Positions 38,301-41,300 of a stretch of DNA of 64,000 nucleotides are shown piece by piece. The translations under genes were made by a program, and so were the position numbers. The notes beneath the pieces are model-generated. The model saw only the letters and a program-made list of their open reading frames with translations, ran no database searches and was not told where the DNA came from. Position 1 is the first letter of the stretch. Each line of letters opens with the position of its first letter. Origin of the DNA: Tubulanus polymorphus (taxonomy: Eukaryota > Animalia > Nemertea); assembly GCF_964204645.1 (NCBI RefSeq), contig NW_027437432.1, positions 124,001-188,000 of the forward strand. The letters are read 5' to 3'.

Positions 38301-41300
38301 TGCGGTGAAATAGTTAGAATATTTACCCGTTCTAGGAGAGATAGAGTAGCTTTCAACGCTCCTTCCGGTCGTCCAAACGGGAAACAATATCTAATCAAAT
38401 ACAATACAACTTTTATTGAAGTTTCATTCAAACAAGGACTAGACCTTATAGAGGCCTACTGGACGCAGTTCGGTGAACTTTCACAAAAACGTTTTAACTT
38501 CATTTCAATTTTTTCACTTTATGTTGAACAAAACTCTCAGTTGAATTCAAGTCTTAACGAGTTGATTTATTGAAAATGTGAACTGATTTTTAAAGTGTGG
38601 AGTTGAAAATCTAACAAATGATTTGACTTGTTTTATTTCAATAAATAGTGATTGAACAAACCTGAAATGCGTGATTTGATTTTCTAGTAAAATTCTCAGC
38701 CTTTCTTTAATTTCATCGAATTTCTCTTTCTCTTCGTGAGTCACGGTTCCGATTCCATCTGGTCTGAAAATAATTCAACGCAAAATGCAAAAATAAAAAC
38801 TCTTCTATTCATTGTGAAATATTCAACAATTTACTAAAAAGATTATTTTCAGGGATTGAGGATAAAATTAACAAGATATCATTCAAACATTTCAATAATG
38901 TTCATTTCGATAAAATCTATTGGAAACAATCAAATCTGAAATATGTAGTGACTTGAATTTTTATTTTCATTCAGGATAAAAAAGTTGAAATGAATTTTCG
39001 TTAAAATCTTTTAGATTTCTATACACCAGTTACCAATCTGATTGACTATAGGAATTTGCTACTCGTAACAAACTTTAGAGCATTAACAAAGGCCTAATAC
39101 AGAGTAAACACTTAATTAATTCAGTTGATTAGAACAAACTTCAAAACTAATTAAACCCTTTTGATCAACAGTAAAGCAATCAATTAGTGAGAGGAATTCT
39201 GTAATTAATCAAATCACTAATTTAGGTAAATTATCATATTATCATAGATTTAGAAATGGTATAAATTAGTAGAGTGAGTGAGAGGGGTTCAATTCGGGGT
39301 AATTTAACGAATAGATTAAATAAAGATTAATTACGAATACTAATTAGTCATACAGTAAACATCGACCAATCAGATTGTAGAATTAATGAACAGTAGTCTG
39401 ACTACTGGGAATAAATACAGCGACATCTGACATCGAGACATTCAGTCCTCACTCGACTCTCACAGCGACACCACAACAAACAAAACAACATGGCCGCCGC
39501 ATCACCGAAATTCATCGAAGATTGCGAAGAATTCTTAGCCGATTTCCTCGAGACGGTCAACAGTCCCGAATATCACCACGGCGACGAACAACACGAAGGC
39601 GATTATTCGTTCGACAGCGCCATCTGCGGGGACGGCTGGTCGACGCCGGAGAATATTTACGAAGAAGAGAACGTATCGGCTAATTCATCGGGGTACCACG
39701 GCAACACGAGCGATGATTCTACGGAAGAGGTCTCGAGTGTGAATTGCGATATCATCTCGGGACTGGCTAGTAACCCGGGACTCGCTAGTAACCCGGTGTT
39801 CCACGAGCTACAGAAAACACTACTCGCAGATTGTCTCCCCGGGCAACAACCGATCAGTCTGTTACGCAGTTTACACGCGGCGCCACCTATCGACGTCAAT
39901 ATCAGACATCGAGCGCTCGAAATCAAAATGGAGATGTTGAAAATCCACGCGTTTGATAAAATCTCCGAATTACAGAATATTTATAAATATCAGCGAGCGA
40001 CGCTGGAAGCCGATCGGTATCACGATTTAATGACCAGCGATTCCGAACAGAATAAACAACTTATACAATCGTATTACGACGGATTAATTCATAAAGTGAT
40101 GCATCGAATTTCACAAAGTCTCGAATTATTGGAGGAAACTTTTAACATCGGTAAAAAGCGCGACCGCGATGAAGAAGAAGAATCGAACGACTCGAAACGT
40201 CGTCGTACGTTTACTAAAATGGCGACTAATATTCTCGAACGCTGGTACACACTACACGCAGGACATCCGTATCCGAGTATCGATGAATTAAACGCGTTAA
40301 GCGACGCTACCGGGGTAACCCTAAAACAAGTACGTCGATGGTTCTCCAATAAACGTAACCGCGCCAACTACCAGAAAAACTCTCGAATCGTGAGTCGTTA
40401 TCCGAATCTAGCTCCGTTTCTATAACATGTGATTGTCATTGATTGTGGAAGTGATTGTCATTGATTGTGGAAAACTCTTGAATTGATCGTCAATGATTGT
40501 AAATTGATTGTGCTACTCATTAAACTGTACTATTGTTTAAATCTGTGCTTCTGATCATGAATTATTTTGTGATAATTTTTAACCATATTTTATACATAAA
40601 TCTATTAGAAAAATAAAGAATATGTAAAAATAATTATCAATTTGAGACTCGTTTTTCAATGTTTGGATTCAGGAGTCACTGCTAGTCACGCCACCTGGTA
40701 TCGCAGCTACTGTCGTCATGGAGAAATAGTATAAACTAATGCAACAGGTGTGAAAATATCTATAGGGGGCCAGTTGGAGGCAGACAAAATTTCAGCCAAT
40801 CAGTGAGCAGGAATATTAGTAATGCAGTTTTTCATTATCAAATCAACATTTTCAAACACTGACTGGGAAAGATCTAGTATCTGACTGATGGCTCCATAAT
40901 ATTCCGATTTCTAAACTGAATTTTACTCCTTTAGGACTGTATTAATAAGGCCACCTAGTGGCATACGGAGGTACTTACCTATTCCCGTGTACGTGAGAGG
41001 CACAGAACGCGAAGCTATAGTGAATGAGTGTCGGGTCGACCATAATTCCATTCTCAGCTCGTTCTAGGAGATCACTGAGATAACACAGGTGTCTATGACA
41101 ACCACGAACACCGTATCGAGCGCAGTATTCATCTAATACAAACACCTGACCGGGACTAAACCATCCCTACAAATATATATATCATTCATTACATCTGTAT
41201 CCCCGGACCTGACCGGGACTAAACCATCCCTACAAATATATATATCATTCATTACATCTGTATCCCCGGACCTGACCGGGACTAAACCATCCCTACAAAT

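Follow-up and report, generated by a model that had tools for sequence, protein, structure and literature searches.

What is a complete, intronless homeobox reading frame doing inside an intron of CADPS, on the opposite strand, in the palaeonemertean Tubulanus polymorphus, and to which family of TALE genes does it belong? Our analysis of the window, by which we mean the whole stretch of 64,000 nucleotides examined, indicates that, very probably, it is a functional gene of the TALE expansion peculiar to spiralians, encodes a sequence-specific transcription factor and is intronless by ancestry. In molluscs, SPILE genes steer the early fates of cells, and their characteristic trait is zygotic expression in early cleavage, either in a staggered pattern from animal to vegetal pole or confined to a quartet. 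As a clade-specific genetic basis for the way in which spiralians specify cell fates, they are the leading candidate. To our knowledge, their function has been studied only in molluscs, and the catalogues cover mainly molluscs and annelids; no SPILE survey of nemerteans was found in the literature searched. SPILE is used here in the sense that is reportedly that of Morino in 2017, and the "TALE clades" are said to be those of Paps in 2015 and Barton-Owen in 2018.

The coding sequence (Table 1) runs uninterrupted through 311 codons to a TAA in one exon, as seen both in the list of open reading frames and on reading the sequence, and it starts at an ATG in good context (ACAACATGG). Its GC content is 0.47–0.52, against 0.27–0.34 in the flanking intron, and its observed/expected CpG ratio is 1.92, against 0.67 across the whole window, which bears out the intact, CpG-rich single-exon frame described in the first-pass annotation. 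CpG richness as a mark peculiar to this gene was considered and rejected, since exons of other developmental transcription factors in the same genome have it too (Tgif 1.81, Irx 1.66, Zfhx 1.41). Next to the coding sequence, the promoter motifs and the AATAAA named earlier are present as strings (CCAAT, AATAAATA, ATTAAA, AATAAA), which we treat as candidate signals only. Three public sequencing runs that contain the locus behave as DNA, their contigs spanning the intron with no splice joints, and one run from 2015, guessed to be RNA, contains none of it. The allele in run X1 leaves out 22 nucleotides at 40429, that is, one copy of the tandem duplication that follows the stop codon.

Table 1. 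Features of the nested TALE gene and of its host gene, in window coordinates.
Feature	Position	Strand	Evidence
CADPS exon 3' of the host intron; peptide end ...ITHF	38662..38763	-	sequence reading, frames
CADPS host intron, 2,215 nt, GT..AG, phase 2; TALE gene inside, antisense	38764..40978	-	sequence reading; flanking-exon frames
Candidate core promoter strings, CCAAT at 39366 and AATAAATA at 39410, 70-125 nt 5' of the ATG	39366..39417	+	string matches only
PADRE-type TALE homeobox coding sequence, complete, single exon	39490..40425	+	ORF list, Pfam, alignment A1, allelic pN/pS
N-terminal acidic region, predicted disordered, aa 1-95	39490..39774	+	pLDDT <50; composition
18-nt in-frame tandem duplication (GLASNP x2)	39758-39793	+	repeat family D6
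PADRE domain, aa 96-222	39775..40155	+	alignments A1, A2; AF2; PADRE text in the supplement of PMC6118893
TALE homeodomain, aa 236-298; HPYP three-residue loop, recognition helix WFSNKRNR (Ser50, Lys52)	40195..40383	+	Pfam, PDB sequence matches, structural comparison
22-nt tandem duplication, perfect, directly after the stop codon	40429..40472	+	repeat family D2
Candidate polyadenylation signals, ATTAAA at 40519 and AATAAA at 40612	40519..40617	+	string matches
CADPS exon 5' of the host intron; peptide end ...SHVHGN, R codon split	40979..41145	-	sequence reading, frames
CADPS PH-domain exon, basis for naming the host gene	43129..43467	-	PDB 1wi1 1e-26, 7vs3 4e-26; Pfam PH 2e-4

The gene is nested antisense wholly within the CADPS intron. 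The intron has the donor GTAAGT and the acceptor TTTTCAG, and the codon that it splits lies between GNR and PDG, as the earlier reading had it; the flanking exons, the GT..AG boundaries and an exon that matches the solved PH domain of CAPS all agree with that reading. The arrangement showed no sign of being conserved, as the metagenome contigs of 2.5–3 kb that carry the closest relatives from outside the genome (P0007 and P0013) contained no CADPS exons. One bivalve relative is itself nested antisense in another gene, which is TTC21-like.

The protein carries a TALE-class homeodomain, the class being defined by a length of 63 residues, three of them (typically P-Y-P) added between the first and second helices. 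Pfam finds Homeobox_KN over aa 252–291 (4.2e-11, above the 24-bit cut-off) and Homeodomain (6.5e-10), and both the HPYP loop and the WFSNKR string noticed at first reading are present. Among solved structures, the best sequence matches are PKNOX1 (7e-11) and PBX1 (8e-11), with the HPYP loop aligned in both, and the structural comparison with Meis2 and Exd gives a Z of 10.8 at an rmsd of 0.7 Å. Neither a MEINOX (HR1/HR2) domain nor an IRO box was detected by Pfam on the protein, and its helix reads WFSNKRNR, not WFINARRR or WFANARRR; membership in MEIS/PKNOX, IRX, TGIF or MKX is ruled out by these absent domains together with the recognition helix.

Upstream of the homeodomain, the first-pass annotation had noticed a helical block to which it gave no name. 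This block is a PADRE domain, that is, a conserved region of ~87–90 or more residues lying directly upstream of the homeodomain. Its N-terminal motif, NPxFxELQxxLL..C....P..L, is found at aa 98–128, and its three-helix core at aa 136–217 includes the blocks L..[FI]Y.YQ....E.[DE]R and YYD...H....R...SL.LLE, which match the PADRE text given for Crassostrea gigas TALE11 and TALE12 (supplement of PMC6118893). The comparison with PADRE proposed for aa ~140–220 thus gave a match both in these blocks and in alignments that run in one stretch, homeodomain included, with bivalve PADRE-TALE proteins such as C. gigas TALE13. In alignments A1 and A2, which comprise 39 relatives including the latter protein, L107, L111, P121, L161, F164, E173, R176, R206 and S210 are near-invariant. 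AF2 predicts aa 140–215 with pLDDT >90, a level reached by the PADRE helices and the homeodomain alike. A PADRE HMM scores the protein at 1.4e-40, a value that is partly circular as the protein is one of the seed members. Structure searches added little: Foldseek matches in the PDB were confined to the homeodomain, with none for PADRE, a feature search of the ESM-Atlas with aa 95–232 gave no usable match, and a wide VIA-align search with the PADRE fold returned only generic helical bundles (F-BAR, I-BAR, designed bundles) at Z ≤9.9, too low to mean anything for helical proteins. The score for a predicted PADRE homodimer, 0.06, is evidence neither way.

An exhaustive phmmer search with the window protein gave 2,575 hits, many of which span aa ~87–300, that is PADRE and homeodomain, in one stretch at 1e-20 to 1e-29. 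The PADRE region aligns from end to end with K1RAG1 and with about 100 other proteins that have both domains. All named ones are from bivalves (Pinctada, Mytilus, Saccostrea, Mizuhopecten, and K1RAG1 of Magallana gigas, called C. gigas TALE13, clade TALE-VI, in the supplement of PMC6118893), and the bivalve relatives are likewise single-exon. Some relatives carry the automatic database names "PBX4" and "ceh-40". The closest relative outside the genome is 37% identical, and the exact protein was not found in a collection of 15 billion proteins. A word-index search with the single protein as query had no match, and with the family alignment as query it retrieved two ENA proteins only.

Searching the genome with the PADRE HMM yields five genes, namely the window gene (C15), C1, C9, C10 and a two-homeodomain gene on C12; none of the five proteins is present in the public protein collection searched. 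A search of the assembly for mitochondrial COX1 came up empty. Three are A/C-like, one is D-like and the two-homeodomain gene is B-like, mirroring the A/C, D and B architectures of molluscs (PMC8524836). The genome also holds at least six non-canonical intronless TALE genes devoid of PADRE, and canonical Pbx, Meis, Pknox, Tgif, Mkx and three Irx genes elsewhere. Because all canonical TALE families thus have genes of their own, the window gene is not a stray canonical orthologue, which together with the PADRE alignment supports the earlier proposal of a lineage-specific spiralian TALE gene (SPILE/PADRE) rather than an orthologue of PBX, MEIS, PKNOX, TGIF, IRX or MKX. Pbx, Meis, Pknox and CADPS were searched exon by exon, with no joined spliced models; the trees accordingly include a single Pbx exon and no homeodomains of Meis or Pknox, as introns split these. 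The tree of PADRE plus homeodomain groups the window gene with its paralogues C1 (47% identity) and C9 and the unnamed protein P0133 (SH-aLRT 95), apart from a bivalve-rich clade. The homeodomain phylogeny suggested at first reading answered in part: Tgif, Mkx and Irx split off at SH-aLRT 82, while the tree is otherwise nearly unresolved and Pbx stays with the non-canonical TALEs, so that the clade assignment depends mainly on the PADRE domain. With the supported subclade, an outside identity of at most 37% and the exact protein absent from the large collection, it is plausible that this new member of the SPILE group is unannotated or a new clade, as the first-pass annotation had suggested. 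The C-terminal motif [FY]PNLA.FL is common to the window protein and the C1 paralogue only.

The affinity with Pbx raises the question of whether the gene could be a highly diverged member of the PBX family, with PADRE a degenerate PBC domain and the product a Hox/Meis cofactor instead of an autonomous cell-fate factor. Among the canonical TALE homeodomains compared, whether solved or from the same genome, Lys52 (WFxNKR) is common to the window protein and PBX/Exd only, PBX1 is joint best match in the PDB, Pbx sides with the non-canonical TALEs in the homeodomain tree, and the automatic names of the relatives point the same way. The top structural neighbor of aa 113–226 in the ESM-Atlas is a PBX4 cluster with PBC, but at a TM of 0.28, which is weak for helices. 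The PBC domain itself fails to appear: Pfam PBC (PF03792) has no match at E ≤1 on the window protein and none on any PADRE gene of the genome, and when the PADRE profile is compared by hhalign with the PBC exons of Pbx one at a time, E values are 0.04–0.42 and probabilities at most 1.3%. This comparison used single exons on the Pbx side, as none of the 150 hits retrieved for a deeper PBC profile had the domain. The genome does have a genuine, PBC-bearing Pbx on C7, which is the sole match of a genome-wide PBC search. We therefore consider a diverged PBX gene quite improbable. An older connection is conceivable though unlikely, in which PADRE would be a degenerate PBC, the intronless SPILE/PADRE family would descend from one ancient Pbx retrocopy in the spiralian stem, and the window gene with its two paralogues would form a deep unsampled branch, perhaps a nemertean one. 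If true, this branch could help to root the SPILE/PADRE family and to test its origin.

The gene of the PADRE-TALE family that we favor is under purifying selection. Alleles in a public DNA run differ at six synonymous and four non-synonymous positions (pN/pS 0.18, binomial p = 0.0085), far from the ratio near 1 that had been named as the mark of a processed pseudogene, and three of the four non-synonymous differences fall within aa 1–95, the fourth at aa 110 and none beyond. A recent processed retrogene or retropseudogene, intact through youth alone and not expressed, would fit a single exon inside another gene's intron with a composition contrasting with its flanks, and the lack of any RNA evidence found, but is highly improbable given the excess of synonymous polymorphisms, the retention of every family-invariant residue (alignment A1), a closest paralogue that is only 47% identical and itself intronless, as is every close paralogue, hence no intron-bearing parent and no recent copy, a family intronless throughout, bivalves included, and a locus with neither a poly(A) remnant or A-tract nor a target-site duplication or other convincing flanking direct repeat. 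The retroposition into the intron that had been thought possible thus finds no trace, the single-exon structure being a family trait, and the gene would owe its intronlessness to the family ancestor rather than to a recent event in CADPS.

In this reading the product has an A/C-type layout: an acidic N-terminus predicted to be disordered is followed by PADRE, and a short linker of acidic and basic character leads to the single TALE homeodomain, after which only a short tail remains. The homeodomain would bind DNA through its WFSNKRNR recognition helix, and the three-helix bundle of PADRE may be a module for protein-protein contact or regulation. The first 95 residues (22 D+E versus one K+R, pI 4.05) are a candidate activation region, which might promote transcription. 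The gene itself may be transcribed from its own promoter within the CADPS intron. By analogy with relatives in limpet, mussel and Owenia, for which early expression has precedent (PMC8524836; PMC12550047), it might become active at about the time of zygotic genome activation and early cleavage, and contribute to the specification of blastomere fates. The TALE repertoire of this genome is compact and apparently complete, and offers concrete probes for cleavage-stage expression work; as an outgroup, the palaeonemertean set could serve to place the origin of the A/C, B and D architectures ahead of the split between molluscs and nemerteans. It also carries a lesson for annotation, as gene predictors easily overlook short genes of this kind, which have no introns and lie antisense within an intron of another gene.

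Three known systems invite comparison. With PBX/Extradenticle, the window protein has in common a TALE homeodomain with Lys52 (~40% identity), a helical domain upstream and, weakly, the structure of the PBC region, but neither Pfam nor hhalign gives a significant match to PBC, and the fourth helix of PBX and its tail GNKRIRYKKN are missing; the Pbx of this genome has several exons, with an intron interrupting the homeobox, whereas the window gene is intronless. The eutherian ETCHbox genes, derived from CRX, likewise arose by duplication within an old homeobox class, evolve fast and are restricted to one lineage, an analogy only, as class and clade differ and early-embryo expression of the window gene is assumed from its relatives. 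From the mollusc SPILE A/C genes (TALE VI/VII/XV/XVII; C. gigas TALE9-13, Nipponacmea fuscoviridis SPILE-A/C) it differs in an overall identity of only 25–37%, in Ser instead of the Ala found in most relatives at homeodomain position 50, and in grouping with two paralogues of its own genome and unnamed metagenome and ENA proteins outside the bivalve-rich clade. Yet it has their architecture, with a variable N-terminus, a PADRE of ~90–125 residues, a short linker, one homeodomain ending in WF[AS]NKRNR and a short tail, and like them it belongs to a single-exon, multi-copy and partly dispersed family whose proteins align with it in one stretch at 1e-20 to 1e-29.

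The intronless gene nested antisense in CADPS was found in the window in every element described by the first-pass annotation: the ORF, the homeodomain and the host intron (see table). On its 311-aa protein, Pfam recognizes a homeodomain (Homeobox_KN, 4.2e-11, aa 252-291; Homeodomain, 6.5e-10) and no accompanying domain, whether PBC, MEINOX or another. The homeodomain superposes on Meis2 and Exd (Z 10.8, rmsd 0.7 Å), and its recognition helix reads WFSNKRNR. When 1.84 billion representative proteins were searched exhaustively with phmmer, 2,575 matched at E <= 1e-3; many proteins of 260-490 aa align without a break to aa ~87-300, thus covering both the upstream helical block and the homeodomain (1e-20 to 1e-29, 30-37% identity). 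The named relatives of this kind are from bivalves (Pinctada imbricata, Mytilus spp., Saccostrea spp., Mizuhopecten yessoensis and Magallana gigas K1RAG1), and K1RAG1 corresponds to the TALE-VI gene TALE13 in the supplement of Barton-Owen et al. (2018; PMC6118893). The PADRE domain was defined as ~87 aa N-terminal to the homeodomain in the mollusc TALE clades VI and VII (Paps et al., 2015; PMC5322547), and its region in TALE11/12 reads ...SPADREQQLL...FFKYQSAQVETDRY...IMDRVESSLQFLE... (PMC6118893, supplement). In a 40-sequence alignment, the window protein agrees with this region block by block, L107, L111, P121, L161, F164, E173, R176, R206 and S210 being invariant or near-invariant. This agreement identifies, at the sequence level, the helical block, previously left without a family, as the PADRE domain, with a conserved NPxFxELQ motif extending its N-terminal side. 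AlphaFold2, run on the same alignment, predicts three long helices at aa 136-217 and the homeodomain, both with pLDDT > 90, and a disordered region at aa 1-95. Fold searches with PADRE returned generic helical bundles only, and the prediction of a PADRE homodimer neither supported nor contradicted such an assembly.

Features of the window (plain coordinates) and of other pieces of the genome assembly (prefixed coordinates)
Feature	Location	Strand	Remarks
Long ORFs from tandem repeats	32532-33454; 34107-34752	both	
CADPS exon	38662-38763	-	on the other side of the TALE ORF
CADPS intron holding the TALE ORF	38764-40978	-	2,215 nt; GTAAGT donor, TTTTCAG acceptor
TALE homeobox ORF	39490-40425	+	311 codons, uninterrupted
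Perfect 22-nt tandem duplication	40429-40472		begins 4 nt past the TALE stop codon
Short, highly repeated element	40766-40856		
CADPS exon	40979-41145	-	reads ...SHVHGN(R)
Tandem array	41145-41910		~twelve 63-nt units
CADPS exon, PH domain	43129-43467	-	
C1 PADRE paralogue	C1:27.03 Mb		47% identical to window protein over aa 73-311; common C-terminal [FY]PNLA.FL motif
C9 PADRE paralogue (L003)	C9:8167077-8168189	-	371 aa
EMSY ENT-domain exon (L056)	C9:8141008-8141139	+	
C12 gene (L007/L008/L017)	G000:C12:4538413-4539795		617-aa single-exon ORF: PADRE, then two TALE homeodomains
PADRE-less TALE genes (L005, L006, L009-L011)	C5:20740961-20741170, C5:20774940-20775149; C1:31217598-31220814; C1:27710489		

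A search of the genome (268 Mb, 77 pieces) recovered single-copy Pbx (on C7, multi-exon and with a PBC domain), Meis, Pknox, Tgif and Mkx, as well as three Irx genes. Since each canonical family thus has its own gene elsewhere, the window gene is no displaced member of one of them, and the first-pass annotation had recognised no PBC, MEIS or IRO domain in it; with PADRE and homeodomain shared with bivalve relatives, its reading as a spiralian lineage-specific TALE (SPILE/PADRE) gene holds. At least eleven non-canonical TALE ORFs are present, all uninterrupted over their conserved regions, and a PADRE HMM picks five of them: the window gene (on C15) and those on C1, C9, C10 and C12. Five further intronless non-canonical genes lack PADRE and have in common a conserved post-homeodomain motif, ..KRKLEE.L...C.EL..; these PADRE-less genes include a near-identical inverted pair on C5, 34 kb apart, and a divergent pair on C1, 3 kb apart. 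Public metagenome and ENA assemblies also contain proteins in which four to nine TALE homeodomains (W[YF].EH...PYP type) follow one another in tandem (matches P0001-P0006, P0021, P0033, P0066 and others); these are unrelated to the PADRE genes.

A tree of PADRE plus homeodomain was built from 198 columns and 67 rows, after dropping rows with an incomplete PADRE match, a PADRE-to-homeodomain span above 330 aa (which removes C12) or intron-split homeodomains (Meis, Pknox). It groups the window gene with those on C1 and C9 and one ENA protein, P0133 (SH-aLRT 95), C9 and P0133 being long branches. The sister of this group, weakly supported (77), consists of two proteins from a single JGI metagenome; the group stands apart from a 31-row clade in which all the named bivalve genes, C. 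gigas TALE13 among them, are placed. C10 belongs to a D-like clade adjoining the two-homeodomain clade. By sequence, the window gene thus belongs to a distinct subclade. The tree of the homeodomain only (62 columns) is almost unresolved, a problem of which the literature also warns. It sets Tgif, Mkx and Irx apart from Pbx and all non-canonical genes (SH-aLRT 82), and this position of Pbx is one of several weak signs that the PADRE family may derive from Pbx, together with Lys52 (WFxNKR), common to PBX/Exd alone among the canonical homeodomains compared, the best ESM-Atlas structural neighbour of aa 113-226 (a PBX4 cluster with PBC, TM 0.28), and the automatic naming of relatives as 'PBX4' or 'ceh-40' in databases. 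Yet Pfam PBC matches none of the PADRE genes of the genome, and hhalign comparisons of the PADRE profile with each Pbx PBC exon are not significant (E 0.04-0.42); we regard such a descent as unlikely.

The suggestion that the gene was retroposed into the intron finds little ground: neither an A-tract nor a credible target-site duplication was found around it, and its nearest paralogue, at 47% identity and hence old, is itself intronless. The bivalve relatives are also single-exon (exactly 344 codons in Pinctada and exactly 371 in Mytilus edulis), and intronlessness is thus a trait of the family. The Pinctada relative (L060) is likewise nested antisense, in a large TPR (TTC21-like) gene, and the C9 paralogue lies 26 kb from the EMSY ENT-domain exon, on its downstream side and on the opposite strand, a position compatible with antisense nesting there too. 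Intronic nesting recurs in the PADRE-TALE family, and neither it nor intronlessness indicates a recent insertion of the window gene.

The CADPS exons were inspected singly; the PH-domain exon matches the solved CAPS PH domain (1wi1, 1e-26; 7vs3, 4e-26). The tandem array lies directly upstream, in CADPS sense, of the exon starting at 41145, and the GGTCAG string of the used CADPS acceptor recurs in each of its units. Downstream of the TALE gene, the intron contains a short, highly repeated element, over which the depth of the public DNA run X1 rises ~30-fold (957 vs ~26), with contig branch points at 40777 and 40820. The long ORFs found on both strands are probably satellite-like arrays in CADPS introns rather than genes.

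The TALE ORF, whose start ATG sits in the context ACAACATGG, has a GC content of ~0.5 versus 0.27-0.34 in its flanks, and a CpG o/e of 1.92 versus 0.67 for the whole window. All the paralogues have values of 1.25-1.94, while Tgif has 1.81, Irx 1.66 and Zfhx 1.41. Genome-wide, exons that code for developmental transcription factors (these three, Six and all the non-canonical TALEs) span 1.1-1.9 versus ~0.4-0.9 for bulk sequence. CpG richness is a property of such exons in this genome, not a peculiarity of the window gene. Of the 99 CpGs in the ORF, 51 straddle a codon boundary, with C as the third base, and codon usage favours NCG/CGN.

In the three runs containing the locus, contigs span the CADPS intron continuously and without splice joints; these runs therefore behave as DNA. 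A further run, from 2015 and guessed to be RNA, contains none of the locus. A second allele in the DNA runs carries ten differences within the ORF, six synonymous and four non-synonymous, and the four replacements (aa 30, 35, 86 and 110) all lie outside the helical PADRE core and the homeodomain. The resulting pN/pS is 0.18 (197 synonymous and 736 non-synonymous sites; one-sided binomial p 0.0085). Three features point to purifying selection: a reading frame left intact within an AT-rich intron, family-invariant residues that are all retained, and this polymorphism pattern. An X1 allele also lacks one copy of the 22-nt duplication, so that the presumed 3' UTR is polymorphic for an indel.

By its sequence, the homeodomain would bind DNA, the strongly acidic N-terminus (22 D+E, 1 K+R, pI 4.05) might activate transcription, and PADRE could serve as a helical interaction module. 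Going by its relatives, the gene may be expressed at zygotic genome activation and early cleavage: precedents are the SPILE genes of limpet and mussel (PMC8524836) and, in Owenia, ten or more unclassified TALE genes whose expression rises at 3 hpf (PMC12550047).

Barton-Owen et al. explicitly called for a SPILE/PADRE survey in nemerteans (PMC6118893), and none was found in the literature searched. A 15-billion-protein collection contains none of this genome's five PADRE proteins, and the window gene is a member, probably unannotated, of a known family; the first-pass suggestion of an unannotated gene or a new clade is plausible, the gene forming a distinct subclade within that family. In the mollusc scheme of Phuangphong et al. 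(2021; PMC8524836), SPILE-A and -C carry PADRE, B has two homeodomains and a modified PADRE, D a conserved C-terminus and a modified PADRE, and E lacks PADRE. The C12 gene has the architecture described for mollusc SPILE-B/TALE-IV, and the five PADRE genes of this nemertean genome parallel the A/C, B and D groups of molluscs.
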